A stretch of DNA of 64,000 bases, from NCBI GenBank assembly GCA_030704615.1, contig CM060731.1:32116001-32180000 (forward strand), read 5' to 3'. Under the pieces are notes generated by a model that was given only the letters and a program-made list of their open reading frames with translations, did no database searches and was not told the DNA's origin. Each line of letters starts with the position of its first letter. Position 1 is the first letter of the stretch. Position numbers and translations under genes: made by a program. This document shows, piece after piece, positions 3,056 through 44,995 of this stretch. The DNA is from Takakia lepidozioides. Lineage: Eukaryota > Plantae > Bryophyta.

Positions 3056-3907
3056 CACTACAACAGATCGTGGTATTTATGACTGTATATATGACTATTT
3101 TGTAGTCATAAACGGTACATATGACTTCTATGACTGTAAGTCGTGCAAACCAAGTCAATACAATGAGTACAGGATGGTACGGTCCGGATGACTACAGTCA
3201 TATGAACCAAGTGATATCTCTCACTGCAGTCATATATACCATACTGCAGCCGCCGCTGCCGCGCCACGTGGCGAGGCGCAATTGATTTAAAAAATTAAAT
3301 TAAAATTAATTAAAATTAAAAAAAAATAAAAACATATGTCAAACGCCGCGTCGCGCCGCATTGTGCCACGTGGCATAATGTATTTTATAATAATGAAAAA
3401 ACCACGTGGCAGTCCATCTAGAATACCACGTGCTATCCCTAGCTCGCCTACTAACCCTAAGGCCATCTTATCCATTTGATTGTACTTAGAGGAGTTTGAA
3501 CCTGCAACCTCTTTACTATAAGAGTTATAATTCACTACTTGTTAACCAATACACCCATTAGTCATTCATATGATCATATGGTGTTTTAATTGTATTATAC
3601 ACACCAAATTACAAAATCCCCAGTAGTCATCAGGACTATGTAACCTCATCCATGTACACACTAGTCATGGAAATGACTATGAATGGTGAGCTAAATCTGG
3701 TCAATTGCCGTTGACCAGCCTTCCGCCCATTCCGGAGCCATGTAGTCATACAGACGACTATTTAGATAGTCGTTCATATGACTATAGTCGTATGAACGAC
3801 TGCGAGAGGTCAATTTCATATAAAAACATGGTGCAGTCATGGTCAAAGTCATGAAAACCATGACTACCACGGTTTGACAGTCACAACTACCGCGATCTGT
3901 TGTAGTG
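3056..3907. mobile_element. Non-autonomous CACTA (En/Spm) element
   Basis: TIRs CACTACAACAGATCG...CGATCTGTTGTAGTG; 3-bp TSD TAT (3053-3055, 3908-3910); subterminal ATGACT/AGTCAT repeats. Confidence 0.9.
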
Positions 3908-3944
3908 TATGAAAGTATGTAGCTCAAGTGTTACTTGAGACATA

Positions 3945-5750
3945 AGCACAGTTATGTGCGGGAGCATCATGGATGCTCACCGAGTGTTCAACAGAATGCC
4001 TCAACGATATTTCATCACGTGGAACACGATGCTTGCAGGGTGTGCACAGCAGGAGCGTGGTATGGAGGATTTGGAGAATGTGGTGAGGGTACCTTCTTCT
4101 TTTACCTATTTCAGCCTGTTTTTCCCTCTCATCATACTTTGCCCTTGTCAAGGACAATGTGGTGAGGGCACCTTCTTCTTCGACCTATTTTCAGCTTGTT
4201 TTACCCTCTCATCAGACTCTGAGATGCATATTGAATTCTGTAAGTTAGCTCGTTGGGTGGATCTGTGGTGGTTTGGAATGACTATGACAAGTAACTACCG
4301 ATGTGGCAGCAGGAAAGTATCCAAAACAGATAACAGACATGAGGAGAAGGTGTGGAATGAATACTTTGTTGACCCCAGTGAATGGTGGGACAACCGAGGC
4401 AAAAAGTTGAATGCCTATTAGATGACAGAGAGTAGCAGACGCAATTCAGCATAGGAACTAGTATGATTGGGTGTTTCCTAGGTTGTCATTGTCAGCTGCT
4501 AGTAACAAAGGCAAAGATGAATGCATGATTTGTGCAGAGGCATGGATAGATGAAGGAGAAGGGATAGAGTGTGGGTCCAGATTCATCCAAGAGGGCCAGA
4601 CTTCAAGCTCCAGATTACCTGTGATTCCATGTGGATCAATAGATACAAGAAACCTAAAAGGCAGCAGCTGCGGCACAGTTGATAAAATCAGGCACCTCAA
4701 CCATGACCGCAGCTTCTGAAAGAAGATCAAGAGAGGGAGTCCACAATGCCTCTTCTGCGGGGTGTGAAGATGCTTTGTGAGGCATGCAGCCTGACAAAGG
4801 CTCTAGGTCTGGAAGCTGAAATCAGGTGCACACTCACATTATCCAAAGTGGATTCATGCCAAATGTTTTTCTACTCAACACCCTGTCAACATGTATGTTA
4901 AGTGCGGGAGCATCATGGATGTTTGCCAAGATTTAGACTACAAAATGCCTCAGCGATCTTTGATCACGTGGAATATAATGTTGGTAGGATTTACCAAGCA
5001 TGGGTGTGGTAGGAATGCTTTGGCGATCTATGAGCAAATGTTGCGCAAAGGGGTGAAGCCCAACCACATCACGATTGCACATGTTTGCAATGCGTGTGCA
5101 AGCCTGGGACCTCTGGAAAAAGGGAAAGAGGTCCATGGTGACATCGTCAAAGCTGGAATTGTACCAGATGTCATGTTGAACACTGCCCTGGTGGACGTCT
5201 ATGCCAAATGTGGGTGCATTAAGGATGCGAAGGGAGTTTTCAACCTTATGGCTGAACCAAATGTGGTGTCATGGAACGCGATGCTTGTAGGATATGCACA
5301 GCAGGGACATGGTATGGAGGCTTTGGAGACCTATGATCAAATGATGGGGAATGGGGGAACCTTCTTCAATAGCACAGCTGCTACAAGTGGGTAGATGGTC
5401 AACTGGAAACAGCAACGGCAGCAGCACAATTGATAGAACAAGGCCCACTACTAATGAAGGTACCTTCTTCTTGACATATTTCACCCTGTTTTCCCCTGCT
5501 ATCAGAGTCGTTCCTAAATTTTCATGTTGAATTCTGCAAGTTAGCTCGTTGGTGGATCTATGGTGGTGTTGGAGTGATTTTGACATGTTACTGCCAATGT
5601 GGTCAACAGGAAAGTATCGAAAAACAGATAATAGAGATGTGGAGAAGCTCTGGAATGAATACGTTTCCGACCCAGTCAATGGTGGAACAATCCAGGCAAA
5701 ATACAAAGGTATTAAAAAACATGTCTTGATCGCACATGTTTTGAGATTTA
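3945..5750 (+). pseudogene. PLS PPR fragments interleaved with OSB-type PDF-motif-like (WWDNR) modules
   Basis: ORF 4891-5394 reads as about three PLS motifs (MYVKCGSIMD...VDVYAKCGCIKDAKGVFNLMAEPNVVSWNAMLVGYAQQGHGMEAL). EEKVWNEYFVDPSEWWDNRGKK (~4340-4405) and VEKLWNEYVSDP (~5640-5675) resemble the PDF motif of organellar ssDNA-binding (OSB) proteins. Confidence 0.75.
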
Positions 5751-5752
5751 TA

Positions 5753-5771
5753 TGAATAGTGAATCCCCCGA
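5753..5771. mobile_element. TIR-like transposon end (Mutator-like candidate) abutting an 11-bp target duplication
   Basis: ATGAATAGTGAATCCCCC immediately precedes GACTTCGCCCT; a near-identical end (ATGAAGAGTGATCCCCCCC) precedes the inverted copy of the same 11-mer at 20870. Confidence 0.55.
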
Positions 5772-8669
5772 GACTTCGCCCTCAAAACCAAACAAGCAAT
5801 CGCTCTCTTGCTCCTTGACTTCGAGAAAGCCTTCAATAGGGTTGGTCATTCCTCCTGGGAGCTCTTGCTAGGATAGGTATCCCACAGTCTTTCAGGAAAT
5901 GGGTTATTATCCTCCTTCAAAACTCCTCGAGCAGAGTCATTGTCAATGGGCAACTTTCGACATCATTCACAGGTCTGTTAGGCAAGGCTGCCCACTAGCT
6001 CCCTTCCTCTTCCTTTTTGTGGTTGACTCTCTAGGCTACATGCTTAAATCCAACCGCCTCAATTGAGGTCTCCTCATAACTAATTTCCACACCTCTCAGC
6101 AAGCAGAACTCAAAGACTCAATGTTCGTCGATAACACCTTCCTCATCCTCCAGGCCACCCCTCAAAACCTCCAAGAAGCTACATCTACATTGAACATTTT
6201 CTGCCAGGCTTCAGGTTTCAAAATCAACTGGGCAAAAACATGTGCTATCCTAACTGGAGACATCCATCAATCCGATTTAGGAACTGATCCTTCATGGGGC
6301 TCTAGCTCGGGTCTATCGTGGCTACGACTTGGACAAACAACAACACTCCTCGGTTATACCTTCGGTGTTGGCCTCTTGGATGACCAAAAGTTTGCACCCA
6401 CCCTGGCCAAATTTAGACGCAAACTCTAAACACCTCTCCATCACTGGGAGAGCCTTGGCGGCCATTTAGGTCCTCTCGGCAAGTATCTGGTACTTTGCTG
6501 CTTCGTGGAGACCGAACACCAATCAGATTAAAAAAATCTTTGGTCTTCTCCGCAATTTTATATGGGGATCTGATTCCCAGACTAAGAAGAGACCACAAGT
6601 TTCGTGGAAGCAGATCTGTCTGCCCAAAAAACAGGGGGGGGCTTGGAATTATTGATCCAGAAACCCAGATAACAGCTCTCCTCGGTAAATGGATTCATCG
6701 CTTCTTTGGCCCAGAAGGGGGTTGGTGGAAATATCTAGTGGTTTAGAACATCCAAGATGCCTCTCTCCTCAAAACAGCCCACTGGACCCCATCTCTGCGT
6801 TGGGTAGCTCAAGGGTTCAAACATAAAGCCTTTGGTTCATCCCTATGGACCACCATCTGGCACGCATGGGGAAGGCTCCGGCCCTTTCTACGGAAAATGG
6901 AACCTCAAACTTATGAAGAGACCCTCCGACAACACCTAGTCTTCAATACCAACAAGCCAACCCAACCACAAAAGGCCCAAGCTAAAAGATGGTCTTACTA
7001 GGACAAATCTGGCATTAACCAAGTTAGATACATATGGAACAACCAAGATTTTATGGACTCCACATCTATTGCTAGCATTGCAGGATCAGCCAGGACTTCC
7101 TCTGGCTTTCAGACCATCAAAGATTCAATTTTCTCTTGGCTACCAACTTTGCAAGCAGGTCCTTCTGCCCCCACCATGAACTACTAGTCCCTGGCTATTA
7201 CCATCCTCTTCGTCATGGACAAGCTAAACAACAGTCTATGGGCTTTTCCGTTCAGTATCCATCCTATGACCATGTCTCCATCCCTACAAAGTACAGTCCC
7301 TCTCTCCCTTCCTAATCTCCCCCATACTCCCATCAAAATCTGATGTTGGTCCTCTCCCACAAGAGACATGAACCCAACTCCAGACCCTATGATCCCCATC
7401 ACAACCTGGCTAGCAGCAAATTCATTCTTTTGGATTTCAGGAAGGCCCCTCGCAGAGCTTCCCTTCGATCCAGGAGAGTGGTCCTGGGCTTTCTCTAGAT
7501 CTCCGACTCCCTTCTTCGCATACACCACCAGAACAGCATACAAGGCTCTGACATCTCCCAGCCCCCTCTTTGCCAAATGGAACTCGAAATGGCAATCTTA
7601 CGGGTTTGTGGAGGAGAACTGGAAATCAATCTGGACATGTATCTGGGAAAAAACAAGGCCAGCCAAGATGTCCGCCTTACTATGGCAAATAGCCAACAGA
7701 GTCCTTAAGGTGGGAGAATGGTTACAATTCCAGGAGGCCTTGCTTTGCTCTTGTTGCTATGGGCAGTTGGAAACCCTGGAACATTGCCTTATCTGTTGCT
7801 TTACCCCCAGGAAAGTCTGGCCTATCGTTAAAGATTTTTATAGACATTGGGATACCCAAGACTTCTCAATTATACATCTGCTACTCAACTATGACTCAAA
7901 TTCAAAAACCAATGCTTCAAACTGCCCAGTCTACGATTGCCTTCGCAGCTCTACACTATGGAACATATGGAAAGTTAGATGTGCCTGGACTCTCTCGGGT
8001 ACCACCTGCACTTTATCTACCTTGCTTTCTAGAGTATTCTGGGACTTGCAGATTGAAGGGAGGAAAGCTTGGGCAAACCTCTGTGCAGATGTCGCAAGAA
8101 GACCCCAACAAGCGGCAGTAATCTACGGTCAGTTCGCCAGCACTTGGGCAAGAAACACTCTTCTCTGCACTAGCTCGTCACCATCCCACTGTGCCTGGGC
8201 AGCTCAACCGCCAGATCGATGGCGAGAACTCAACACACCTCTCCATGGCAGCGTCCCCCGAGTTTGACTAGGATATCAATTGGCGCCACATCAAATCATC
8301 TGCTAGACTGAAATTTCGCTGAGATCCATTCGTGCACAGATCGTGCACACAAATAAGCTTAGGACAGGCTCCAAGCGGCCGCTAAGCCATTCACGTTTTA
8401 GATTCCTTGTAGATCTCACGAGTCCAGAAGCGACTGCCTACATTCAAAGCAACCCCCTACGAGTGTGACTTCTACATAGGGCTTGTAACCCTAGGTCATC
8501 TTCTCCCTTCGGGAGGTTAGTTCGTCCATCACTGACTACGGTGTGTGTACCTCATGGTGTAATCTGGGGTTTTAATTTTTTTCCCCACAATAAACTCAAT
8601 AAAATTAATTCAGAGCCTTCCCCTGTTCAAAAAAAAACAAAAACAAAAACAAAACAAACAAACAAACTT
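5772..8669 (+). mobile_element. L1-clade LINE, 3' half (RT C-terminal part, zf-RVT region, 3' UTR, A-rich tail), degraded
   Basis: LLLDFEKAFNRV, VRQGCPLAP, MFVDN (degenerate FADD), SGFKINWAK, GGLGIID, LLWQIANRVL..CSCC..ETLEHC...LWNIWKVRC; AATAAA at ~8588 and ~8598; (AAAC)n tail 8628-8663. Confidence 0.9.
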
Positions 8670-9842
8670 GACACGGATTCAGACTTGTACGAAAATTTGA
8701 AACGAGGAAAATAACACGATAAGAACGATCAACGAGGCGTTTATAACAAGAAATGATTCTTCCAAAAAAGAACTGAATTCGATTATAAAAACCCTTGTAG
8801 AGCAATACTGTGAGTTTTTTCCCTACAAGCTCTCCATTGTTTTTCTTTTTTCTTTTTTCTTTTTTCTTCTTAAGAACAGAGGCTGTGGCCCTGGAATTTA
8901 TTAAAAGAAAATAATGAGATAAAATTGTAGTTGAAAAACACTTTTGAAATCGCTATAAAAAAAAAGACTTGAAATATTCGAGCTAAAACCACAGGAAGAG
9001 GCTTATATTAATTTAGTTAACCAGCTCATATGGCATTACTTTTGCGTTAAAATAATAAATGCTTCTCTTAAAAAAGAAAAAAATGTTTATTACATCCTCC
9101 TATAAATTTACGAGGAAGCTACCACAATGAAGCCTTGTTAGAGCTAAAATACGAGCATCTTCCCAAATTGAAGATCATCATAGAAAACATTTGGGAATTT
9201 CTTGAGGCAGATTTCAAAAAGTCTAAAGAGCTTGATTTGTATAACAGTTACTCCGTGTTTACTAAACTAGCTGTGTATTATTTTCTTTATTGTGCCGAGA
9301 AGGACGATGAGAAAATTATTAAGGGATTCGCGCACCAAATAGGAATAACGGAAAGCGACTATACACGGAAAAAATTTAAGACTACAAAACACTATAAAAA
9401 AACTTCAGGAAGTCTGTAAACGCATAACCCAGATCTTGTTGAAATCCAAGTTACTACAAAACTTTAGAACGTTAAGCGCGGAACTGCTGAGTCAAGGCAT
9501 CCGTCATGAACATACTGATTATATATGGGCTACTTGTAGCAAGTTTTACATGTATCCAACAAGGGTACTCGAGGATATTGAATTTTGCAACGACAAGAAT
9601 ATCTCATTGTTATCGCACTTAAAACAAGCTTTTCCCGAAGTTGAATTGTTGGGCTATTTCGTTTATGGGTACACAAATCTACCGGTTTTTGTAATTCCAG
9701 AATCCCAGGAGAAGTTATTTATTGAAAAAATAATAATAAATTATTCCAGTGACGACAAAGTCGGAACTGGTCTTAGCAGAGGGGAGAATAAGCTCTCTTT
9801 TGTCGTTTGTTTCGTTACAACGCCAATTTCCGAGCTATATAT
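8670..9842 (+). pseudogene. AT-rich degraded coding sequence of unknown family (LINE insertion target; continues from 24495-24234 on the minus strand)
   Basis: Lys/Ile/Glu-rich ORF pieces (9135-9419, 9436-~9840) and a GTGAG...AACAG intron-like segment (~8810-8878). The reading frame joins across the LINE TSD with the 24.2-24.5 kb segment. Confidence 0.4.
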
Positions 9843-10340
9843 AGTTCACTACGATGCCGGTGCTAGGGGCGCTTGGTATTTGGAGGAAGGTCACACAAGT
9901 GAATTTCACGGGGAGTTATTGGATTCCAACATCAACCATTTGTTGACGTCTTCAACACCGAGGGAGCTGCTTGCGTTGCAATCTTTTCTAGAAATGGCCG
10001 GTAAGAGTTTGGCTTATTCAAGGATGGTGGTTATAGGGGACTCGCAATGAGCTCACATAGTGTTGTCAAGAGGTGGATCTCGACATTATCACATCCAAGA
10101 ACTACATACTGCACGGATTCGACAGCTTTGTGAAGATTATTCTTTCATCCTAGATCATTCTCTGTGGGTGCCTAGAAACCAGAACAAACTTGCTGATAAC
10201 TTGTCTAAAGCATGGAAATCCAATTCCAAGATTCAGTGCAGAAGCTCCCCCTCTCATGTGGGTGTACATCTTTTGCCAACAAGCAAGATTTTGCCTGCTT
10301 GTTGAAAGTGGTCAATATTATATTATAGGATGTTATATGC
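9843..10340 (+). pseudogene. DIRS-type RNase H domain, third copy with a premature stop
   Basis: VHYDAGARGAW...SSTPRELLALQSFL...VVIGDSQ*AHIVLSRGGSR...WVPRNQNKLADNLSK. Highly similar to 29746-30177 including its 3' flank, but has TGA at 10048-10050 and a small deletion. Confidence 0.8.
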
Positions 10341-10623
10341 ACGGTGTCTCCGAACATCGTTGAGATATTTGTTTGGTATATCAAACTGAGATTGAACCTC
10401 ACCCTGACAGCTGCTCAATCAGCTCGTCTCAATGACGTGTTGGTGGAAAGCCTTCGAAGAGTGGCAATCAAAGTTTCTCAATGGCAAGATCGAGAATTTC
10501 TCCATTTTAAGTCGCCCTCCCAAATTTGATGGGAGGACAATTGACCTCGATGAGGTCGTATTATTGGTCTACACTCGCGAAGGCCTGACTTTGCTAGATC
10601 GATTGGATACGAAATCTTGAAGC

Positions 10624-11307
10624 TTGTATAAAGCTATTGACGGAGGAGGAAAGAAAGGGGAAGGGAAGGGGATATTGGCTTCAAAATCAGGTGTCCATGC
10701 TGATGACAAGGTTGTAAGGCTGGAGGCGAGAATTGTGGAGCTCGAGGCAGAAGTTGTGTGCCTCAAGGCGGAGGTTGTGGGGCTCAAGGCACATATTATG
10801 CGGCTGGAAGCTAGCCATGAGGCTCAAGCTACGAGATTAGAGATTGGAAGTTGCCCTCAATATCCCATAAAGTCCATCCCAACCAACCAGAAATCGAATG
10901 AGGTTTCGTACATCCAGTACTTTGAGCGTCATTGCTTCACACACATCCTTGCGTGTATCCAAGCGGACAATGATGGGCTTTTGCCACCCCATCGGGCACT
11001 AAAGGAGCTCCATGTGTACCTTCGGCCACTAAGAGACTTTCACCGGCTTCCAATCAGAAATACCTTGGAGTATGAGGGGTGGCATGGTAATTGTGCTATC
11101 ATAACACACTTGCAAGACATGGCTAGGCAGTTGTCAAAACTTTTGTCTATTGTGGGTTCTTGTGAATGTCGTTTGCTCGCATGCAGGAGGTTAATTTCAA
11201 GAAGAATCAATGGATGGTATAAACTTAATGTCTTTCATCACCATTATTCTTTTCTCAATGGCAAGGTTCATGAAGCACCACCAAATTCCAATTACCTCTT
11301 CCAATGA
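10624..11307 (+). CDS. Hypothetical ORF with heptad coiled coil (probably TE-derived or a remnant)
   Basis: 227-aa ORF; LEARIVELEAEVVCLKAEVVGLKAHIMRLEA heptad repeats; non-ATG start; no family recognised. Confidence 0.3.
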   Translation: MYKAIDGGGKKGEGKGILASKSGVHADDKVVRLEARIVELEAEVVCLKAEVVGLKAHIMRLEASHEAQATRLEIGSCPQYPIKSIPTNQKSNEVSYIQYFERHCFTHILACIQADNDGLLPPHRALKELHVYLRPLRDFHRLPIRNTLEYEGWHGNCAIITHLQDMARQLSKLLSIVGSCECRLLACRRLISRRINGWYKLNVFHHHYSFLNGKVHEAPPNSNYLFQ

Positions 11308-13871
11308 AACCATTCGACTGCAACCACAGTATTTCATTCAATTGTATATATGGGGGACAATACCTCATCTCTTCAAAATATTTTTCAGTCGTGCAAATAA
11401 GTCCAATCTGATATAGCATTAGTACATTTTGAACTTGTGAAGGTTCTCAATTGCTCACAAACCTCTTAAGCATGAAGTCATGACAACACATAGCTTTAAG
11501 TGAACCACTGTCTATTTCACTTATAACTATACATTTTCCTAATTGAGCCATCAATAGTAAGAAGCCACACAATTGTATCGAGTAGCATCATATGCAAACA
11601 AGGAGTTTCATTAGCCAGTCCTAAGTCAAAGAATAAAGCTCCAACCAATGATTATATATGCTGCTAAAAGATTTCAAAAGTGGTGACATGAAGATGGCGT
11701 TGCACAACAAAGCTCAAAACGTGAGTATGACAAGATTTTTGGAATCCATGTGTACAGTGGAATCTCATATTAGCTTGCCCAAATGACTCTATTTGTAGCA
11801 AATAATAATTTAGAGTTTTTATGTATTCTCTTTAATCAAGCATCATGGAGCTAAGATGTTGAATGTCTTAATTTGGATAAGCCTTCTTTTTTCTCTTTGT
11901 ATGTCCACCTAGCATTTTAGGGATTTGCTTGTTGTTAATACAATTGGTGTCATTTGCTCCATCCTCTCCTACTAGTTATTACTAGTTGGAGTTTCATATC
12001 ATCATTTATTTCACATTGTCAATTTTGTTGGACTTCGTTATTGGAAGTGGGTGATTATATTGCAGTAGCACAAGTGGATTTTTTCACTGTGAATTGGTAC
12101 TCTGTGACTAAATGTACAATTAAAGATGTTTCATGGGTATGGTCCTATTAGGAAGCCCTGATATTTCAACACTAGTGAAAAGGGTACAAATTTTTTGTAT
12201 ATGGTGATCCTGCAAGAAATTATATTGCATTGATGGCTCATTGCAGGGATGCGGTCAAAGCTGCAAAGACAACTATAATTAATGATAGTGGGACCATTGA
12301 AATTGTGGCTATGAATGTTAAGAAGTTTTCTTCTTTGGGACCTAGTCCCATTTTATTTATTCCTTGAAGTTGCAAGAATCTTGTCCAAAAAAAAATGGTT
12401 GAGTTTTTTTTTTTTTTTTTAATTTTTAGCCTTGTATCGGAGATTAACTCAAAGACACTTTCATAGATGGATTTACACTTGAGTATGGATATTCATCAAC
12501 TTTGCTTTCTCAACAACATTTCATAGTATATTTCAGGTGTTACAATCCGATATTACTCTTTCCCTAGTATTACGATATGTACTATGATATCATTCAATTC
12601 AATTCAATTCAATTTATGAAGTTTATTTATTTTTGCTTAATCTGTATTTATATTTACTTCAGCAATTGTTTTCATTGGAATAAGATATAAAGGACTCATC
12701 TTATGCTTTTCATTGTACATCACCCTACCCAATGTAAAGTTGGTGGATTGAAAGGTTAAAGGTTATTTGCTTGTAGAAGAGATCATATGGCTGATAAGGT
12801 GAACAATATCGCTACAAGGGATATTAAATACATACAAAATTGAAAACAAACAAGGTATCTCCGGCCACCTATATAGACTGCAATTGAGAATATACAACAT
12901 TCAACAAACATCCAATGCATCTGCAAGATAGATTGCATCCACGAAATGAGAATTCCCTAAACCTTCTATTTTATGGTGTCAGTATGATTTATATAGGTTT
13001 AATATTTCTACGGATTTGGTGTTTGATGCAATGCATACCTTAGCACTTTATGTACCTTTAAAACAACATTTGTTGGTACTATTGCACAATCTGAGAAGGC
13101 ATAACTAGAAAGTGCACCGGGGATAGGTATAGTAACTAGCCATTCAAATTTGTGCACCATGTAGCCTGAATCTCCAACAACATGTTTAGGATTTTGGAAG
13201 ACTGATGAGTATTAAAATTTTGTTATCTTTCATATAGGTATAATTACGAAATATTCATTGCTTAGTGATTTAGGATTGATCTTCATTAAAGTATATCGAC
13301 TCTTTTATACACTCATAAAGAAAGAAGGTTGGAATTACAAGAAAAGTTTGAAAATAGTAGTTTTGGCCTCATCTATATCCCACACCTTTTTGTCTTCTCT
13401 GTACTAATAATCCCCCATCTCAGGACACTTGGCCTCACCTCCTCAGTCACTAGTCACTAGTGCACACATCCCACGATACATGTAGGTCTTCGCATCACTC
13501 GCATAATCAAACAGTTTGTCAATTGCATAAACTACTCGTGACCTATTCCGAAACCCGCTGGTGAATCTCCCTTATAAACCCAAGAACATATCAAGGCCCC
13601 GCCGGACCCCCGGACCATACCACCCGGCCCCACTGGCTTCTTCACTGTAATTGTCAAATTTCACCATGCCATTGTCTATCATGTCTATGCCCAAAATTGT
13701 ACTTGTCACAGGAATATTCTCTCTCTCTTGGGTTTGCCCTCGCTACTCGCAGTGTGTATGCTTCATGGCCCTCTCCGGGTTTTATCTTTTCCCCTATTTA
13801 ATAAAATTTTGAGGGCCTCTGTCTCCTCTTAAGCCAAAAAAAGTAAAACTCCCCATGTTCTTATATATATA

Positions 13872-14241
13872 CTAGGGCAGCCTGTGCCGTTGGCCCAAGT
13901 GTCCAGTGTTATCTAAGTCCAAGTGCAATCCCCTATGTATCCTAGTGCGTCTCCTATGTCGAGGCCCAAATGCGATCTCTAGGGTAGCCTATACCATTGG
14001 CCCAAGTGTTATCTAAGCCCAAGTGTAGGATCTCCTATGTATCCCAGCGTCAGCTCTTATGTAGAGGCCCAAGTGCGACCTCCAGTCCACACATTTCTTT
14101 GTAACAAAACAAACATCCAACTTCATTTTAGTATATCGATTTCAATTCTTCACACATGGGCATCGACATAGGGGATACACTTGGATACATAAGGCATTGG
14201 ATGACATTGTACACTTGGGCCAATGGCACAGGCTACCCTAG
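13872..14241. mobile_element. Tc1/Mariner (Stowaway-like) MITE
   Basis: ~30-bp TIR CTAGGG(C/T)AGCCTGTGCC(G/A)TTGGCCCAAGTGT flanked by TA on both sides; internal CCCAAGTG repeats. Confidence 0.75.
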
Positions 14242-14607
14242 TAGATGGATATTCTACCTCGTTTCATATATTGATGGGTTTCTGTCTTTGCTATTTTTCA
14301 CGAATTTCCAGCAACCAAAAGTACTTGAAATTCCATATCTCCTCATAGGGTAGCTTCAATTTATTGTTTTCCATGAATTTATTGAGTAATCCAATTTATA
14401 CCTTTGACACACCAGACCGTGGTTTGAACCCACAACCACATCCAACGTGGTATGTGCCCATTACCAAAACAAACAAAACAAACGTCTCGATTCATATATT
14501 GATATATATATAAACACAAACACAATCGTTGAAAATATACATGTAAATATACATGATGGTCACGATATTGTGTATGAAATACAGATGTCTGAAGTTAGAC
14601 AAAAAAA

Positions 14608-14730
14608 AATGATAATGAAACCGTGTAAGACTTTATTTACAACATGTACAACGGTGAACATACATAGGATGAGAAGTTCCCAAAAAGGGGGGGAGAAGAA
14701 CAAGAAACAAGAGAAGAAAACAAAAGCTAT
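14608..14730 (-). mobile_element. 3' fragment of a retroelement with a (CAT)n-like tail (second copy at ~61923-62045)
   Basis: ATGA(T)AATGAAACC.TGTAAGACTTTATTTACAACATG...GGATGAGAAGTTCCCAAAA(G)n is shared with 61.9 kb; the minus strand has AATAAA before the tail. Confidence 0.5.
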
Positions 14731-14964
14731 AGTAAGCTACTCAACCAGAACGACCCTCCCCAGCCAACAGCCTCTGGTGCGGTGCTAAGCCACTCGTGTA
14801 TTGGCCTATGGTCTGGGGTTCAAACCCCGGAATCTGTCTCTCTGCCTTGGGGTTGGGCTCTGCCCCTGTAATGCCTCCATGGCTCAGAAAGGGGGTTCAT
14901 CTACCCCCTTTATTCTCATGGGGCTCTTGAAGGGAGTTGACCAATAGTCTGCGGGCATGTTTGG

Positions 14965-16414
14965 GAAGTACGTACTCGGAGCAAAATTTGTCACAGCATC
15001 AAAGCCGTCAGCCTCGCATGCTACTTTTACTTTGCTGCCTCTTCAGTATTATCTGCGAAGAAATTCCATAGATCAAAGAGTCAATGTTGGTACTACAAAT
15101 TGTCTGCAAATGCTCGCACGAATCATGCAAGGAAGTCGCATCAGTCTTTAACTGATCCTCACTACTTCTGGAGCTCATATCATGGCAGCATGAATATTTG
15201 ATGCGAAGAGGACTTGATATCATGACTTTGTTTTAAACCCATCATTACCCCATGTATGTATAATGCTTACCGAATGTTACACTTTTCCCAGTTCTGATTT
15301 TTTTTCCATCTTTGTCAATGGAAGTGACTTCGGTTCCCCATCTTGTCCCCATATGGCGGCACGCCTGCATTGTAATAGACTTCAAGATCAGCAGATCAGT
15401 AATAGTTTGTAATTTAACTAGAGACACTGTTTCGAATGGAACAGCCAACTCCACCTTGCAGCAGGAGGCAGGTACAGAGATTGAGAATAGCTCTGGCTGG
15501 TGTCCGCCTTCATCCAGGATAGTTGTGCAATGACCTTTAATTTCATAAACATATCATTGTGCATTCATTATTTCCTAGACATTAACAGCAGATCTGCAGC
15601 AATCATGTTTAAAGACATGCAAGTTTTGCTAACATGACAAGAAATCCCAATGTGGGATGTGTCACCAGATATTGACTTACGCTTGTACATGCGCATCTTC
15701 CCATCAGGCGAGCACCTGATCCTGTTAATTGTGCAAAAACAAACTCGACTAGTTCTTAAACGCATGTTTTGCATCATTTGAGTATCAGTTTATGAACTTG
15801 ACACTCAATTACTCATGCCTCACTCATGCAAGATTTGACATTTAACCCTCATCACCTTGCAGAAGAATAGTGAGTTTTTGTTCATTTGTATGTGTAATTC
15901 AGCAAGCCGCTACTTGGAAAGGAAGACTTCAAGAACATCTTTTCAGCTGGAAGGCAGTAGCCCTTGTGGTGAAGAGACACCATAAGTTACACTCCCTTGG
16001 GGAGGCGTCGTACCTTTTTTTTCTCTTTTTTGTTTTGTTTTGTTTGTTTTGTAGAGTTGAGATGTCCCAAACTGCGGGGCCCCACCCTGAGTGCCTAGTA
16101 CCGTTGGAAAGCCCTCGATGTGGAGGGGTGCACGGACTTGGTCTCATGATTTTTGGACTTGTGGTGTGGGAGATGTGGAATTTCAAGTACTTTGGCTCGT
16201 GGAAATTCGGGAAAAATAGCAAAGTGGGCTCTCCTGGGACAATGGTTGGAGCCTCGACGGGAGATATCATTAATGATTTGATGTATTACTACTAAAAAAA
16301 AATAGCAAATTGGGCTTTCATAATAACTAATTTGTACCTATTCCTCAAATGACAGATGAGGTCCATGATGTGTCGCCCACTCCATTTTTCCACATCCTGT
16401 TCATACTTTGTGAC
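14965..16414 (-). pseudogene. Divergent AP2-subfamily (double-AP2) gene remnant: linker plus second AP2 repeat
   Basis: Spliced exons 16414-16338 (VTKYEQDVEKWSGRHIMDLICHLRNR), ~15721-15681, ~15533-15454, ~15365-15271 (GTRWGTEV...VTF) and 15052-~14965 (DNTEEAAK*..GFDAVTNFAPSTY, cf. TEEEAARAYD..GLNAVTNFDMSRY). Contains an in-frame stop and a deletion. Confidence 0.7.
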
Positions 16415-18829
16415 CTACGAAAGTTAGAAACCAAGAAGTTACCATTAGCAAGAAACAGTACCAAGACTTAAATTCAGTATACAATTCGTTGATTAACTTC
16501 AATGCAACCATTGGTTCCATACATTAACTTATGTTAGCACTGAAGTTCCTTGTTGATAATTTCACAATTATTACATATGAATTCATGGACAAAGAGCCCC
16601 ACTCTTTTTTTCCTACGCTTTGCAGAGTGTTGAATGATCATGCTAGCTTTAAAGACATTTCACATAGATCACCGATTGCATGGGTGTAGCTGTAGGCCGT
16701 AGTAATTACTTAGGGGTAGTTGGCAGTTATTCATTCCGATTAGTATGGCTCTTCTAGCTAATGAGCCATGTTACATTTATTAGACTCGGCGGTGCTCGAG
16801 GCGGTGCCACCACTGTATATGGCTTGCTCTCCAGAGGCCTTGTATTCCAGTCTCATTGATCCTCAATACCGTAGTACCTTGGCAAGTTCAACACCAATTA
16901 AATTATTTTTATAATTATCGAAATTTTCATTAAATCGTTGGAAGCAACGTCGAAATTTGTGAAAACCCTAGCTGCCAACTGTCAAAATTTCTGGAAACCC
17001 TAAGATTGCCGTCGAAACTTCTGGAAGGCCAAGTGTCGAAGTCTCTAGAACTAAGGGTCATCTAAAAGCCATCGACGCTTCATCATGTCACTAGGTAGTT
17101 ATATGGCTTTCCTTTCTGGTCTCGCAGTTCTAAGACTCGGCCTTATCAGCGGTGAATCACAACAGGGTAGATATGTATGGTAGCCTACAGGTTGAATCAC
17201 AAGTTGACAGATCCACGTTGAGTGGCTATAATGGCACAACAGCATGCATGGTTTAGATATCAACGCTTTGGAGCAACAGATATCACAAACTTGAATTGAT
17301 AAGTGACTGTCTAGGAACTGAAAGTAAAGTGTTTTATGATATCATGCTTCTGAATTTCTTACATGCTTAGTTACATATGAAGCAGAAGGGCTGCCTGGAA
17401 TCATTATGAAGGGTTGCAAGGTCGGTTGTATCCCGTGGCAACTTCTTCGACATTCTTTCAACCAATCCTAGCCTTATCAGCGGTGAGTCACAACAGAGTA
17501 GGTACATATGCAGAGTGTGTTCCAGTATATGTATGGCAGCCTGCAGCAGGTGTTCTCAATTGTAATAAATTACAGTCACAGTTCCACCTTATGCTCATAG
17601 GAAAAGAATGCAAGCACAAGAGCTTACATAGCACCTGGATACCAGAGCACTCTCAGGCTCACCATAAAATCGCTTGAGCTTTTGACTGGAAATGACCCTT
17701 CTTGTGGTAGATGTGACTTGGTAACTTGGGTTAAAGGTCGGATGAAGGAGCAGGCTTTTGAACTGAACATTTGACTTGCAGTTAAGAGAATCGACAGATA
17801 GAGACTCGATGATGATGAAAGTGCTCACTCTGGCATTGTAATGCACTAAGACTGCCCTTGAACTTTGGCATTTTATGAATGAAGTTGTTGACCAGCCTAT
17901 ACAAACATGCTTGGGCAGAGAGCATCAGTTATGATATCCAATCAGCTTCGAGTAATCATCAGGCCACTAGAAGCATTCGTGTCATTTACCACTGGGATAA
18001 CGACTCATTTTGAGTCATAAAAGTCAAAAAACCGGGATCGACTGGAAGTTACAAACGACTAGTTACAATAGACGTGGAAGTTGGGTCGGACATCCAATGA
18101 TTGGAGTGGTAAAGGACGCAGACGCATGAATAACTGCTCAGCGATTATTGCGATTAATGCTGAAGAACCACGTGGCGTAACCAGGCGGGCTGCCCGTGTG
18201 TCTGACCTTTTGGGTTGACTTTGACTTTTCCCTCCGGATGAGTGGACTGACTCACCGGAGCACGGTGACACATGGACGCGGATGTAGACGTCGACGTGGC
18301 GGCGCCGCGACAACCACCACTGCTGCCACATGGCCACGGGCCTGGCGTCATGTGGTAGTCGACCACATAACTTGTAGTGCTACATGCCCAGTGGCAACTG
18401 CGACTACGGAAGTCGGCGCAACCACTGTTTTACTACTTTAAATGAAGTGCTCGAAATTACTTGAACAATCACTTATAGTGGTTCATGCTTTGAAAGTTTG
18501 GTGTTTGTAGTGAGCACGCATGTAATGCCATACAAGAGAACTAATCATGTCATTAGAAACGCGAAAACAATGAAAGACATGTCATGAAACAAAACGAAAT
18601 GAAAATGAAATGAAATAAAACAAAATGGTACTTTATTACATCTGCAGAAAGCTCAAAGAGCTTATGGTACAAAATGAAAAACCAAAGTCAAAAAACAGCC
18701 CAAAGCTACTACTGCTCTGGGGATTGCCTAAGGGTCAAGGCCTCGTGCAGGTAAGCTGCCAAGCAATTGTGATCCTCATAATGCAAGACTCAGTAGATTG
18801 AGTCCCACGGAATAGACCTACCCATGCAG

Positions 18830-20460
18830 GTTTCTTGTAGCTATTGATCCACAGGGAATCATAGGTAATCTTGTGCTTGAGATCTGGTCCTCTTGGATGA
18901 ATCTGGACCCACACTCTCTTTGCTCCTTCAGCTACCCATGCCTCTGCACAAATTATGCATTCATCCTTGCCTTGCTGCTAGTAGCTGACAATTCTAGGAA
19001 ACACCCAACTGAGCTTCTCACACTAGTTCATATGCTGAATGCGTCTGCTACTCTATGGAATGTAACATACATTCACCTTTTTGCCTCGGTTGTCCCATCA
19101 TTGACTGGGGCAGAAAAGTATTCATTCCACAGCTTCTCCTCATCTCTGTTACTTGGTTTTTGATACTTTCCTGTTGTCACATTGGCAGTATCATGTCAAA
19201 GTCACTCCAAACTAGATTCACTCAACCAGCTAACTTGCAGAATTCAACATGGAAATTGAGGGCCAATTCTGATAAGAGGGAAATACAAGGTGAAATGTGT
19301 TGAAGAAGATGCCTTCATTAGCAATGTCTGATTTTATAAATTGTACCGCTGCTGCCAGTTGACCATCTACCCATGTAGGTTTCTTGTAGCTACAGAGTCA
19401 ATCTGGAGCTTGAAGCCCGACCCTCTTGGGTGAATCTGCACCCACACTCTATCCCTGCTCCTTCAACTATCCATGCCTCTGCACAAATCATGCATATATC
19501 ATTGCCTTGCTGCTAGCAGCTGACGGACAGCCTAGATTTGTTCTAGCAAACACTCCAACCCTACTTGGAAAAACAGGCTGAAATGTGTTGAGGAAGGTGC
19601 CTTCATCAGCAGCACCTCATTCTATCAGCAGTTGCCCTGCCGCTACTGTTTCCACTTGCAACAATTGACCATCTACTCAAGCTGATTTCTTGTAACTATT
19701 GATCCCTCAGCCTGAACCTGAACATGAATCTGGACCTCTTTCCCTGGTCCCTCAGCTATCCCTGCCCGTGCACGGATCATGAATACATCCCTCAGCCTTG
19801 CTGCTAGCAGCTGACACTGACGGCGTGAAGTTCTTCCAAAAAACACCCCAACCCTGTACTTAACAGTAGTTCCAACTCTGAATTGCAATTGCTTCTCTCT
19901 GTAGTCCAACAAGCACTCACCTTTTTGTCTCCATTGTCCCCCCACTGACTGGGGTCGGAAAAGTGTTCATTCCAAAGCTTCTCTTCATCTTGTTATCTGT
20001 TTTTGGGTACTTTCCTGCTGCCACATCAGCAATAACTTGTCAAAGTCACTCCAAACCACCCCACATCCACCCAACAAGCTAACTTGCAACATTCAATATG
20101 TAGATTCAGGGTTGAGTCTGATGAGAAGGCAAAATAGGCTAGGTCAAAGAAGAAGGTGCCCTCACCACATTGTCATCGACCTTGTGTCATGATCCATGGA
20201 GGATTTGACTGACCATGCACCCAAGATGACCTCTTGTGTGTGTGAGGTGTGTGCTGCTTCCACAGGGAATTGTAGGCGATCTGTAGCTTGAAATCCGGCC
20301 CTCTTGGATGAATATGGACCCACACTGCTCCCTGCTCCTTCAGCTATACATACATCCTTGCCTTGATGCTAGCAGTTGACAATAACACCCTAGAATTGTT
20401 CCAGCAAACACCCCAACCCTACTTATCGCACTAGTTCCTATGCTGACTTTGCTTCCAACA
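18830..20460 (-). pseudogene. Tandem copies of the PPR N-terminal/OSB-motif module, inverted relative to 0.5-5.7 kb
   Basis: The reverse complement matches the 4200-4760 module (GCAGAGGCATGGATAG...GGGTCCAGATTCATCCAAGAGG; GAGAAGCTGTGGAATGAATAC...TGGGACAACCGAGGCAAAAAG); about four partial copies. Confidence 0.75.
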
Positions 20461-20633
20461 TGCATTGATCATTGTACACTGATATTGACCCCTTGTATGT
20501 ACTTTAATTGCCAATTTACCCATCCCTTGTGTATAAAAACTTGTACAAATTTTTATTTTTTAAAAAGCCCCTCCCCGTACAAAAAAAAGACAAAAATTTA
20601 GGTCTTAGGATCATTCCCATCAACAAATGCAGG

Positions 20634-20671
<38 letters not shown>

Positions 20672-20850
20672 CTTGTACTCTTATATGTATTTATAGATCT
20701 TTGTAAAGTTTATGTAGATGCATTATCCCCTACGTATACTTCAATATTTTAACCAATCATACCCTTTCCCATACATATATTTCGTACAATTGTTTTTCTT
20801 CAAAACCCCCTCTCCGGTAAAGTATTGATCGCAGATGGTGTTCTGGCCTA

Positions 20851-20869
20851 ATGAAGAGTGATCCCCCCC
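20851..20869. mobile_element. Second TIR-like transposon end abutting the inverted 11-bp duplication
   Basis: ATGAAGAGTGATCCCCCCC directly followed by AGGGCGAAGTC (20870-20880), the reverse complement of GACTTCGCCCT at 5772-5782. Confidence 0.55.
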
Positions 20870-23800
20870 AGGGCGAAGTCAGGTATTTCTTGGGCAAGAA
20901 GGAGGTTGTCCATGATGTATCTGCCTTTAATGAAGCCGGTTTGGTTAGGTCTGATGAGAGCTGGAAGGTGTGGTTGTAGTCTGAGACCTAGGGCTTTGGC
21001 TATAATTTTATAGGCTACATTTAAGAGGGTGATGGGGCGGTAGTTGGAGATATTAGTGCGGTCTCCTTTTTTGAAGAGAAGAGTAATGACTCATTGGGAC
21101 AAATTTTCTGGCATGTTGCCACAGCGGAAGATCTGGTTGGCCATGGAGAGAAAGTCGCTAGAGATTTCAGGCCAGAGGCATTTGTAGAACTCCATTGGGA
21201 TTCCATCGATGCCCGGGGATTTCCCATTGTGCATCGTGCGCAACGTTGTTTCAAGTTCTATCGGAGTGAACTCCCCTTCGAGGGAACCAAATAGGTTTGG
21301 TTGTAACATGGATGGGGTGGATTGCAAGCATGTTTGTTGGTGAGGAGAGAGGGTTAGATCTCCTTTAGAGTCACTTTGGAAGAGATTTGTAAAGTGGATC
21401 TTTGCTAGGGTGGATAGCTGTTTTGGGGATGAGGCAGAAAGACCAGTGGATTGGTCAGTTAGTTCCGTAATGTTTTGAGAGGCTCTGCGTAGCCTAGTCT
21501 TGTCAAAGAAGTATTTTGACATTTTTTCCCCCTTGGTTGACCAATTGACTCCGGCTTGGAGCTTGAGTTTCTGTTCTTGGAGGGATTGGAGGGATTCTAA
21601 ATTCTGCTTGGCTTCAAGGTATGTGAGGTAAGTGTGATTATCACATCGAGGGGATTCGATTCGAGTCTGACACGCAACAAGACATTTGGTTAAAGCTTGG
21701 TTTTCCTAGAGCGTTCCAGAGCCAAATCTCTGCTCATGATTTGAGCACTCACACTTACTGCCTTGAGCCTAGCTTGAAACCGTTCAATAGGGTCTTGAAG
21801 GTGGACGGCGGATTGGGACCAACACGTTTTGAGCCTTTGTTTAAAGGAGGGGATTTTGAGGAGAGAGGTATTAAGTTTGTAGATACCTTTACCTCTGGAT
21901 TGGGTGTTTAGGATTTTTAGAGAAGCAGAAATGAATGCATGGTCGAAACCTTGCAAGATTGGGGTTTGAGGGTTCCTAGTTATCCATTGGACAATATTTA
22001 AAGAGCAGTAAAATCGGTCTAGCCTAGCCATTTGAAGGTCTGGTAAGGTTCTGTTGTTTGACCAGGTGAAGGTCGGAATTTGGGGTGTTGGTGGTGCGTT
22101 ATGGGAAATTGAAATAGCTTCCACTAGATTGTGTGAATGAGAGAGGTTGTTCCTAGTTATCCATTTCTGGCGTAGTTGGGTTAAAGGCGGAAGGGCATCT
22201 CCGGTCCTCTGGGGCCTCAACCATGTTGAAGTCTCACATGACCACCCAACCGTCTATGTAGTCAACATCTTTCATCTTGTTGTCAAGGGCAGTCCAGAAG
22301 TCTGCCCTTTCAGCGGTCGAGTTGGGTGCATAGACGTTGACTATGCCTAGTGTTCCTGCGTTGTTGGGAAGGTCCAGGGCACAATATTGGGCCCTTCTCG
22401 GAACCCATGAAGCCTCACAATGGAGGCAGGGGTGGAGAGAAGGGGAGAGGAGGATTACGGTATCCCCTCTTGAACCGGTGGATGTTGGCTTTCAGAGAGA
22501 GTTGTTGATTGGCCAAAGATGGTCAGTGAGGTGGGAAATTTTCTGGGTATCTAGTTTGTGTTCTTGAAAGGAAATGATGGCATCCTGGCGAAGCATTGGC
22601 TGCAGCCAGTTCCTAAGCCTGACGCTTTTTAGGGAGTCTGGGCCTTGCCCCAACCCCCCGATGTTCCATGAGGATAAACTAATCAACATGTGGGTGGAAT
22701 AGAAGGCCGAGGGTGGTAATCTCATTCGATGGCCCAGGGTTGTCAAAGAAAAAGTGGACCCTACGATCTGCTGGGAGTAGAGAGTTGACCCATCGAAAGG
22801 TGGGGGGTGGTTTGGGCAGGAGCTTCCTAACTTTGATCATAACACATTGGTTTGGGTAGATGGGTCAGACAGGGCAGGTGGAGGTGGAGATGGGACGAAC
22901 TGGCTGGGGTTTGAGTTGATTGTGTTGATAGATATCAAATGGGTGTAGGTAAGGAAGAAGTTGGAAGGGAGAGGAAGATGAAGAGGGGGAATGTGGATGT
23001 TGTGGGGGAGATGGTTCGAGTAGGGTATTGAGAGAGAAGCAGGAAGAGAGATGGATGGAATATGCCTGCAGACAGATTTTGAGGAGGATTCATTGCGACA
23101 GAGGAGCCAACAACGTTTAGAGTTTTTTTTGTCAGCATAAAAAATGAAGCAAGGGGTGGGGTTTTGTGGAACCTGGTCCATTTTGGTGATGACATCTTCC
23201 ATGTTGGGCTCCGAAGCTGGAACTGCAGGCTGAAGTGGAGGTAGATCTTGATGGGCGATAGCTGGAGAGGCAGAAGAATATGGGGTGTCTTGCTGCGAAG
23301 GGCCTGATGCTGCTGGTTGACTTGGCATTGAGGGGGCAGGCGCCACGGAGCGGGCAGAAACACTTGATGAGGAGGATGGCGAGGGCGGGGGCCTAGCTCC
23401 GTAGAGGTGGTCCCACGTTCGCTCGAGGTCCCCTTTGTGGTTTTCCTCATCTATTTCTGCTTCCACAATTGCTTATAGCAAAGCAAAGGCATTGGTGAGA
23501 GTTTCTCTGAACCTTGGCTTGAGTTTGGCAGCCCTTCTTGGTTCCGAGAGAATGTTTTTCCGTACCCAAGATGAACCTGTATGTGGCTGCGTCCCATAGA
23601 TATCCGCTTCTTCCATAAGAGCCAGGATATGTGCCACAGGGTTACAACTGAGCCCTGGGAATTTGACCAAGAAAGAATCCCAGGAGACTTTGGTGGTGCC
23701 TGACAAGTGGTAGTGCGGTTGAAAAGCCAGAAAGAATTCTTGAATTTATTTTTTAAGCATATTTTCGGGGCAGTTGGTGGGCGAGTTGTTTGCAATGAAC

Positions 23801-24233
23801 TGTCGGACATCCTGCACGGTGATCCATAGCGATGCAAAGTGCCCCCAAGCCGCTTCAATGAGAAGGAAGGACATTGGCGGTCCTTTCTTGAAAATTAGTG
23901 GAGAAATGCAGGAAGTCTTTGGGATGTCCGGAAAGTCGATCTCTGAGGAGCAGCTGAGGGACAAGCCTGGGAATGTTTTGATTCCTGCAAGTGTCTTGGC
24001 AATGGCAGAGTGGGCATGCAATACCCGTGATGACCACAGTGTTCGAAGGCTGCGGAGACTTGTTGGGAAGAATGGCCGAATCCGCTGAAGGTGGGGTGGG
24101 TGTATGCAGAACCCCCCCTGCGGGTATCCATTTGCCTTTGCTGGCCCAGGTTGCCTTTACATGTGCTGATTCCAGTCTCATTGGGTTTGTAGAGTCCCGG
24201 ACTTTCTTAGGGGCTGGAAGAGTGGGGCTGATG
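20870..24233 (-). mobile_element. L1-clade LINE, 5' half (ORF1 remnant, APE endonuclease, RT N-terminal part)
   Basis: SWNIGGLG..IISFQEHKL, FTWSN..ARLDRFY, GKGIYKLNTSLL, SKYFF, KSPGIDGIPMEFYK, NYRPITLLN, LIRPNQTGFIKGRYIMDNLLLAQEIPDFAL. Stops exactly where the 5772 half begins. Confidence 0.9.
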
Positions 24234-24558
24234 AAGTTTTATTTCAGGAAGTAGTTCTTCTATTTGACCAGGTACTTTTTCTGTATTTATTTTTATAATT
24301 TATCATGTCATTTTCTATCTCAGCATCCAAATCTTGAGCAACTGTATTAGTATCTGTGCCGCTAAATTTTTCAAAGATAGTGAAACAAAGGTCCAAAAAG
24401 GTTCCCGGAATAGATTGAATTTTCTTGTCAGGAAATCTTGTTTGGATTTTGGTTCGTAAGCTAATACTTAAGCTGCGCTTCAAAATGTTGAGCACGATTG
24501 TTCAATACTAATAACGCGTCGCTATCTAGTACCTTGTTTAACGAGAGTTATACTGAAC

Positions 24559-25198: not shown

Positions 25199-25626
25199 TA
25201 CTGAACACAGGAAATTCCAGTGCGCAACTAACTTGCCAACTTCTACACCTTGTCTGGGTTCACGAAATCGCAAATGATTCAAAACTGGTGACTTTGCAAT
25301 GGCCACATTCCTGCAACTGCAAATGTGATCACTCCAGTTGTGGATGGTTTATGTAACGGAAATTATAGACACTACAACTTATTCAAAGGTTCCACCTCAG
25401 CTATTGATATACAGGTGGACTTTAAGAAGCAAAACGAGATAGCAGCGAAATGATCAGTACGTAGGAATCAATTTCGAATCAGTCGACTTGAAGTTTTAAG
25501 CCCACAGGTTTAAGATTGACTTTTGCGATGATGTTTCACAAAATGAATTGCAATTTGAGTTTGCTTGAAATCGTCTTTAGAATATACAATCTGTTGTTCT
25601 ACGGTTCTCTATGATCTTTGATGCAG

Positions 25627-29419: not shown

Positions 29420-29745
29420 GAGAATATCAGTTGGTGGCTGCGACCAGCTTGAAGCCGCCTAGCTCAGCTGTGACCTTGAAGCCGCTTCTTCAGGAAGAGA
29501 TTATCATCTGGTGGCTGCAACCTTGAAGCCGCCTAGCTCAGCAGTGCCTGTGACCTGTGACTGAAGAGATTATCAGTTGGTGGCTCTGATCTTGAAGCCG
29601 CCTAGCTTAGCAGCGCCTGTGACCTTGAAGCCGCTTCAGGAAGAGATTATCAGTTGGTGACCTTGCCTAGCTCAGTAGAGGTGACCTTGAAGCCGCTGGA
29701 GAGATTAGCAGTTGGTGGCTGTGACCTTGAAGCTGCCTAGCTAAC
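29420..29745 (+). repeat. Variable-copy minisatellite upstream of the RNase H ORF (about 5 units)
   Basis: Modules GAAGAGATTATCAGTTGGTGGCT and GACCTTGAAGCCGCCTAGCTCAG recur every ~60-80 bp; only about 3 units at 34670-34878. Confidence 0.8.

Positions 29746-44958: not shown

Positions 44959-44995
<37 letters not shown>

Follow-up and report, generated by a model that had tools for sequence, protein, structure and literature searches.

Two inverted halves of one LINE in the moss Takakia lepidozioides: a nested small TIR element and a probable 14.75-kb inversion

Described systems and how the locus compares

A single LINE that lies as two oppositely oriented halves with a short overlap at the break is the product known from L1 twin priming, in which the inverted 5' part sits directly upstream of the 3' part. 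The locus described here, found in a window of 64,000 nucleotides (the whole stretch of DNA that was analysed), shares the two opposed halves and the short overlap, but its halves are about 12 kb apart, stand in the other order and carry foreign terminal inverted repeat (TIR) ends at the break; the different order and spacing led us to reject twin priming. The foreign ends resemble those of plant non-autonomous Mutator-like elements (MULE-type MITEs), with which the element in our window shares TIRs, a small AT-rich non-coding body, a low copy number and an 11-bp target-site duplication (TSD). Unlike those elements, it comes without a transposase or a recognisable MULE TIR consensus, and its two TIRs share only about 75% identity. 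The textbook range for Mutator TSDs is 9-11 bp (Wicker et al. 2007 TE classification), and the duplication at our locus lies within it.

The reversed-ends inversions of maize Ac/fAc (Zhang and Peterson; Sharma et al.) likewise show a transposon terminus with a matching TSD at each breakpoint. In the maize inversion both elements, Ac and fAc, are still present, and each keeps an untransposed end as its anchor (bioRxiv 10.1101/2021.03.08.434479), whereas the fragments in our window together make up a single element of 489 bp, and the sequences next to their inner borders are contiguous parts of one repeat unit; a plain break within an element that had inserted normally fits this contrast. With inversions made by two breaks and end joining the locus shares reciprocal novel joints, a 36-37 bp deletion at a joint, breakpoints that both lie in transposable elements and the lack of any new duplication at the true breakpoints. 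With respect to such inversions its sole special feature is the site of one break, a TSD-flanked element within a LINE, and thanks to this the inversion is readily recognised.

The LINE halves and the small TIR element

The features around the two breaks are as follows.

5702 to 5771, minus strand: small TIR element, end A, 70 bp; TIR core 5722-5769; last two bases GA
5772 to 5782, plus strand: target-site duplication, copy 1, GACTTCGCCCT
5772 to 8664, plus strand: LINE 3' half; RVT_1 from profile position 60 on, a weak zf-RVT match and an A-rich (CAAA)n tail
20451 to 20869, plus strand: small TIR element, end B, 419 bp; TIR core 20821-20867
20498 to 20669, plus strand: nested insert in the element, 172 bp, ending in 36 A's (read directly from the sequence)
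20870 to 20880, minus strand: target-site duplication, copy 2, the reverse complement of GACTTCGCCCT
20870 to 24240, minus strand: LINE 5' half, decayed; 5' region through RVT_1 profile positions 3-55 plus 7 residues

The minus-strand half of the LINE terminates in ...LAQEIPDFAL and the plus-strand half opens with DFALKTKQAIALLLLDFEKAF. On the Pfam RVT_1 profile the 5' piece spans positions 3-55 and then adds 7 residues (37.7 bits against a cutoff of 29.6, at 20870-21090 on the minus strand), and the F of the 3' piece is where it enters the profile, at position 60, so that the halves adjoin and share only the duplicated residues. Additional RVT_1 pieces in the plus-strand half cover positions 60-194. 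The 11-mer GACTTCGCCCT occurs exactly twice in the window, in opposite orientation, and the duplication is perfect. The preliminary description had reported an 11-mer at both breaks and a reverse transcriptase frame that joins across them, and both observations held. The 5' piece also matches residues 516-571 of human LINE-1 ORF2p (E 6e-7), and from these similarities the divided retroelement appears to be an L1-type LINE with a LINE-type reverse transcriptase domain.

The LINE copy is decayed: the 3' half carries numerous stops and frameshifts, and upstream of the reverse transcriptase, where the copy is heavily decayed, no Pfam match to an apurinic-type endonuclease was obtained at E<=1 in 21693-22836 (minus strand). 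A protein word search within the length range allowed returned no relatives of the 307-aa C-terminal LINE piece, and exact-protein look-ups gave no record of the two junction-spanning ORFs or of the 299-aa LINE ORF. At the outer borders, the (CAAA)n tail ends at 8664, and past about 24220-24240, the outer edge of the 5' half, the summed contig depth drops to the unique level. Judged by contig depth, the LINE has about 6-10 close paralogous copies at 85% identity or more. It had been proposed that the outer flanks also join through AAACTT; this motif is indeed present at both borders, but as a match it is weak, being only 6 bp long, with a 3' copy that runs into the A-rich tail.

Each copy of the 11-mer adjoins a similar terminus, as had been noticed earlier. 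The terminus GGGGGAT(T)CACT(A/C)TTCAT is found twice, at 5752-5769 and 20851-20868 and both times on the minus strand, where 0.05 occurrences would be expected by chance, and the similarity of the ends reaches 48 bp (5722-5769 against 20821-20867) with a score of 30, compared with a maximum of 21 in 300 shuffles. The TIRs are imperfect (about 75% identity over the 48 bp). Besides these two ends there is no third terminus in the window, which makes a single element and not a pair; a third terminus-like copy at 20456-20493 was considered and rejected as not significant (p about 0.2-0.6). The element is 489 bp long today, non-coding and 33% G+C. No transposase gene lies near it, and tRNA and Rfam scans of the element, including its 172-bp insert, gave no match. 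Having TIRs and a TSD in the 9-11 bp range, the element is probably a non-autonomous, Mutator-like, cut-and-paste element, an assignment made solely from the length of the 11-bp duplication. The contig depth of 20451-20869 is about 6-10 times the unique level, and the end-B region therefore belongs to a low-copy repeated family. A scan of metagenome contigs for TTGATCGCASATG, a gap of 10-16 nt and ATGAAKAGTGA returned one match, L001, which proved unrelated on inspection.

The repeat arrays and the position of the inversion

The remaining features define the inverted segment and its surroundings.

355 to 5701, plus strand: left array, an abundant mosaic repeat with PPR-bearing modules (self-BLAST blocks)
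5702 to 20450, no strand: predicted inverted segment, 14,749 bp, whose re-inversion in silico restores canonical structures
8665 to 18817, no strand: mostly low-copy DNA within the inversion, the presumptive original 3' flank of the LINE, with no homology to the arrays or the LINE
18818 to 20450, minus strand: right array of the same abundant repeat, about 2.3 units of non-PPR modules (self-BLAST, contig depth)

The two arrays are mutually inverted, with 75-90% identity. They had been described as two PPR-module arrays, of which only the left one fits the name: it has Pfam matches to PPR, PPR_2 and PPR_3 at 727-1191, 1213-1566 and 4891-5391, and the right array (18818-20450) has no PPR Pfam match. 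The summed contig depth of the right array is 2e5-9e5, compared with about 70 in the unique flank, and the depth of the arrays exceeds that of the element or the LINE about 1000-fold, so the arrays are a family separate from the element. By contig depth, 18450-18817 is again high-copy. The homology of the left array to other repeat units ends abruptly at 5701, and the last module of the right array continues the unit that is severed there.

The preliminary description took 5772-20880 as the inverted block. We instead place the block at 5702-20450, so that one of its breakpoints falls within the element; re-inverting it restores two normal structures at once, a canonical TIR element in a minus-strand LINE and a continuous repeat unit. 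The re-inverted sequence, which had been proposed as a check, reads TSD - TCGGGGGATTCAC... 489 bp ...GTGATCCCCCCC - TSD, with the 11-mer now direct and the whole element within one LINE. Alignments of the re-inverted sequence to three reference repeat units cross the re-made joint (5455 to 5844 or 5893), each with a single gap of 36-37 nt exactly at the joint, and in the present arrangement all three end at 5701. A second pair of candidate breakpoints, 18818 and about 5381, was rejected because its sides, with an overlap of at least 24 bp, are not complementary.

Helitron2/Helentron-type elements carry short terminal inverted repeats and a 3' stem-loop and insert at a T-T site (PMC11417382). 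These features were not found at the a|b module boundary or at 5701, and we rejected a head-to-tail Helitron2 junction as the explanation of the 5701 / 20450 border, where neither terminal repeats nor a stem-loop were found.

That the inversion is an assembly artefact, absent from the genome, we regard as very improbable. One breakpoint does lie within a very high-copy repeat, and the available reads were Logan contigs from one sample (four runs, 85% likeness, the matches listed being dominated by the abundant repeat), among which no listed piece bridges 20450|20451 or 20869|20870 and none was shown to span 5701|5702 or 5771|5772. Numerous letters of the window in 20500-23400 are missing from all four runs, so the sample may differ from the assembled individual. 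Against an artefact, the novel joints 5701|5702 and 20450|20451 are both present and reciprocal, with no common repeat across them that could mislead an assembler; the arrays are just 75-90% alike, and a loss of 36-37 bp is what genuine end joining typically leaves at a joint.

Proposed history and competing mechanisms

What is observed, namely two element ends, a duplication, LINE halves that fit together and a repeat unit that is collinear over the re-made joint, is consistent with a history of three steps, which we consider probable: insertion of the LINE, insertion of the small Mutator-like element and an ordinary two-break inversion. An L1-type LINE would first have inserted on the present-day minus strand. 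A small non-autonomous cut-and-paste element would then have entered its reverse transcriptase region and duplicated an 11-bp target. Finally, two double-strand breaks, one inside the small element, 70 bp from one of its ends, and the other 14.75 kb away within a unit of the very abundant repeat, would have been rejoined the wrong way round, inverting 5702-20450 and dropping 36-37 bp of the repeat unit. The two element fragments, now at 5702 and 20451, would thus have been contiguous before, and the inversion would have separated one element end and the LINE 3' half from the other end and the LINE 5' half. Moving one end together with the LINE 3' half would explain why the element ends are now co-directed and the copies of the duplication are reverse complements.

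Read in this manner the structure is an ordinary finding, a nest of a LINE, a small TIR element and a short A-tailed insert that was cut by a fixed 14.75-kb inversion. Its exact breakpoints can be used in the annotation of this moss genome, and two over-readings, a Pack-MULE and a transposase-made inversion, are corrected. An inverted pair of TSDs with co-oriented TIRs is not in itself evidence for alternative transposition; the telling test is whether an alternative pair of breakpoints restores canonical structures.

The main competitor of the three-step history is reversed-ends (alternative) transposition, one of the two origins suggested earlier, which is topologically possible but in our judgement unlikely. 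Here a transposase would have cut head-to-head Mutator-like ends lying in the repeat unit and inserted them into an intact LINE about 15 kb away, so that a single step makes both an inversion of 5772-20869 and the 11-bp duplication. The topology is that of the published product, with a terminus and matching TSD at each breakpoint (bioRxiv 10.1101/2021.03.08.434479), both termini are joined to the TSD precisely and without loss, and the collinearity of the repeat unit would also be explained if the paired ends had inserted in that unit. The ancestor that this mechanism needs is nevertheless an odd one, since fragments of 70 bp and 419 bp, which together make one small element, would have abutted at their outer ends as in a circularly permuted element and would have had to replace 36-37 bp of a repeat unit whose parts on either side are contiguous. 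The model also expects an untransposed end to be kept at each breakpoint, and there is no other terminus in the 64 kb; the ends are only about 75% alike with different terminal dinucleotides, and no transposase gene lies nearby. If reversed-ends transposition were nonetheless the true origin, the locus would be a case of natural alternative transposition outside maize Ac/Ds, in a bryophyte.

Matching TSDs placed precisely at both termini are equally expected if an inversion divided a normal insertion afterwards. Against the three-step history, reversed-ends transposition from a permuted element yields the identical present-day sequence, and the two terminal bases of the element ends differ (TC and GG). 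Replicative-type intramolecular transposition was rejected, as it requires two full inverted copies of the element.

The topology of reversed-ends transposition could also arise with no transposase, if the arms of a palindrome broke at its centre, an 11-nt staggered break in the LINE was filled in and end joining inverted the segment. Re-inverting 5772-20869 does put the ends head to head as 48-bp arms with a spacer of at most 2 bp. We hold this extremely improbable: an 11-bp duplication with TIR-like ends placed exactly against it is what marks a transposon insertion, depth shows the end-B region to be a repeated family with about 6-10 copies, and the same odd ancestor is required as for reversed-ends transposition.

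The other origin suggested earlier was a Pack-MULE with PPR fragments, inserted into the LINE first and broken up by an inversion afterwards. Its order of events, insertion and then inversion, is the best supported one, but the element itself is no Pack-MULE, because the re-inverted element of 489 bp holds neither PPR nor any other gene fragment and the arrays lie outside it. A large Pack-MULE, in which the arrays are the internal cargo of a multi-kb element in the LINE and a later inversion broke within them, is quite improbable. Array sequence does lie as close as 70 bp to one end and 419 bp to the other, and the left array does hold PPR fragments. The start and end of such a cargo would, however, have to fall 36-37 bp apart in repeat-unit coordinates, for which we estimate a chance of about 5%, whereas a breakpoint at exactly those positions of the repeat unit explains the spacing directly. 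The array family is about 1000 times more abundant than the element ends, and the arrays, at most 80-90% identical over short stretches, are a poor substrate for recombination; the candidate second breakpoint, 18818 against about 5381, has the overlapping and non-complementary sides noted above. Rather than cargo, the arrays are a separate and extremely abundant repeat family that holds the other breakpoint of the inversion. What the small element does contain is the 172-bp A-tailed insert, which is flanked by an 8-bp direct repeat, CCCTTGTA, at 20490-20497 and 20670-20677, and is probably a short retroposed sequence.

Two complementary halves of one LINE

The preliminary description of this locus proposed that a single LINE had been split into two inverted halves, with an 11-bp duplication preceded by similar ends at both breaks, and both proposals were borne out by our analysis. 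The features involved are the following:

355-5701, plus strand: left array, an abundant mosaic repeat
5702-5771, minus strand: end A (70 bp) of a small TIR element; its terminus, ...ATGAATAGTGAATCCCCCGA at 5752-5771, adjoins the 11-mer copy at 5772
5772-8664, plus strand: 3' half of the LINE
18818-20450, minus strand: right array
20451-20869, plus strand: end B (419 bp) of the small TIR element; its terminus, ...ATGAAGAGTGATCCCCCCC at 20851-20869, adjoins the 11-mer copy at 20870
20498-20669: A36-tailed insert of 172 bp inside the small TIR element, with the 8-bp direct repeat CCCTTGTA on both sides
20870-24240, minus strand: 5' half of the LINE

The minus-strand sequence at 20870-21090 matches positions 3-55 of Pfam RVT_1 (37.7 bits) and continues for seven residues beyond the match, ending ...QEIPDFA(L), and the plus-strand piece at 5763-5873 enters the profile at position 60, with the F of DFAL. 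The two halves are therefore complementary parts of one LINE, and their sole overlap is the duplicated 11 bp. Later plus-strand pieces correspond to RVT_1 positions 113-194 and are followed by a weak zf-RVT match at 7344-8264; the 5' piece is similar to residues 516-571 of human LINE-1 ORF2p (E 6e-7). The copy is old, with numerous stops and frameshifts. It terminates at 8664 in an A-rich (CAAA)n tail, and its 5' border lies at about 24240, where contig depth drops to the unique level. The outer flanks were also said to join via AAACTT; the hexamer is present at both, but at 6 bp it lends the joining little weight.

The 11-mer GACTTCGCCCT occurs at 5772-5782 (plus strand) and 20870-20880 (minus strand) and nowhere else in the window; each copy has one of the similar ends directly on its left in plus-strand coordinates, and the two ends are oriented alike on the plus strand. 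An 18-nt terminal motif has two matches in the 64 kb against 0.05 expected. In a local alignment the ends remain similar over 48 bp (5722-5769 and 20821-20867, about 75% identity), and the score of 30 exceeds those of all 300 shuffles, which averaged 13 and peaked at 21. The TSD length and the presence of TIRs suggest a Mutator-type element, and the family is new, uncharacterised and of a known kind. Scans of the nested 172-bp insert for tRNAs and Rfam families found nothing; it is probably a small SINE-like retroposed sequence.

Re-inversion of the block and origin of the inversion

Because the homology of the left array to other units ends at 5701 and that of the right array begins at about 20450, we re-inverted 5702-20450 in silico, in place of the 5772-20880 proposed earlier. 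The sequence 5771->5702 followed by 20451->20869 then forms a 489-bp element (33% G+C) that starts TCGGGGGATTCAC..., ends ...GTGATCCCCCCC and carries AGGGCGAAGTC on each side in direct orientation within one minus-strand LINE. The array sequence also becomes continuous: local alignments with three reference units (4150-4700 and the reverse complements of 18800-19320 and 19700-20180) run from 5455 to 5844-5893 across the re-made joint and are each interrupted once, precisely there, by a gap of 36-37 nt; all three end at 5701 in the present arrangement. Re-inversion between these limits, with one break inside the element, thus restores two canonical structures.

The history that we consider quite probable has three steps. 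The LINE would have inserted first; a small non-autonomous TIR element would then have inserted normally, duplicating 11 bp; and 14,749 bp would then have been inverted between two breaks, with one break within the TIR element, 70 bp from one end, and the other within a repeat unit, the rejoining losing 36-37 bp. Neither true breakpoint shows any duplication or microhomology, and the arrays, at most 80-90% alike over 140 bp or less, are too diverged to favour homologous recombination; from these two observations we infer end joining as the mechanism. An element inserted into the LINE and later split was one of the two histories offered earlier and fits best, but the arrays were very probably not its cargo. 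This specific fixed inversion is of a known kind.

The other history, reversed-ends transposition into the LINE, appears improbable. In the published maize-type product, each breakpoint holds a transposon whose untransposed end keeps it anchored, and the two transposed termini carry a matching TSD (bioRxiv 10.1101/2021.03.08.434479). The Takakia locus shares the matching TSD, which a split normal insertion would show equally. A search of the 64 kb for further termini found none. Reversed-ends transposition would here require a peculiar ancestor in which the outer ends of the 70-bp and 419-bp fragments were linked, so that one small element, circularly permuted, took the place of 36-37 bp of a repeat unit. 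A break at the centre of a palindrome would need the same odd ancestor and seems less probable still. Misassembly, too, is less likely than reversed-ends transposition, since the two reciprocal joints are both present with no repeat common to their two sides; among the contig matches listed, which come from one sample and are dominated by the abundant repeat, none bridges any junction.

Repeat arrays and their abundance

Modules of the mosaic repeat in the two arrays are 75-90% identical in self-comparison. Both had been described as arrays of PPR modules, which holds for the left array, where the modules are true PPR modules, but not for the right array, which contains none. A Pack-MULE carrying PPR fragments, with the arrays as its cargo, has even less in its favour than reversed-ends transposition: the re-made element is 489 bp long with the arrays outside it, and, in coordinates of the repeat unit, only 36-37 bp would separate the start of the cargo from its end. 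Neither terminal repeats nor a stem-loop of the Helitron2 type (features as in PMC11417382) were seen at the relevant array borders. The translation of one module (18801-18977, minus strand) somewhat recalls the E/E+ terminus found in PPR-DYW proteins, with no Pfam match.

Summed depth of contigs from four runs of one sample placed on 18450-24400
Right array (18649-20439): 2e5-9e5
Element end B and LINE: about 400-700
Unique flank: about 70

Run X1 alone placed 20,795 contigs on this region. Relative to the unique flank, these depths correspond to thousands of copy equivalents for the array modules, a dispersed family to which 355-5701 also belongs by homology, and to roughly 6-10 copies each for the families of the LINE and of the element end. 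Many alternative module junctions appear as loose contig ends at 18818, 19070, 19392 and 20140. Since at many positions in 20500-23400 the letter of the window is absent from all four public runs, the sample behind the runs may be another individual or strain than the one assembled, although one flank contig, at 24157-24400, is identical to the window.

Other features of the window

Two further inverted-repeat pairs are candidates for additional small TIR elements. The pair at 13862-14251 has arms of 55 nt (84% complementary) separated by 280 nt, and that at 14286-16224 has arms of 34-48 nt (75-88%) with about 1.85 kb between them. The inverted segment also contains a 227-aa ORF (10624-11304, plus strand) with a heptad-like repeated stretch (LEA.IVELEAEVV.LKAEVVGLKA...), whose sole Pfam match, DUF7518, is sub-threshold. 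Positions 25510-30585 and 31181-35720 form a tandem duplication (about 5.65 kb, 92-93% identity), and a 0.5-kb piece of it recurs within the inverted segment at 9843-10336 (88%). Tandem and inverted modules of 0.2-1.2 kb (67-94% identity), unrelated to the arrays at 355-5701 and 18818-20450, are found at 39969-50473 and 55377-55819.
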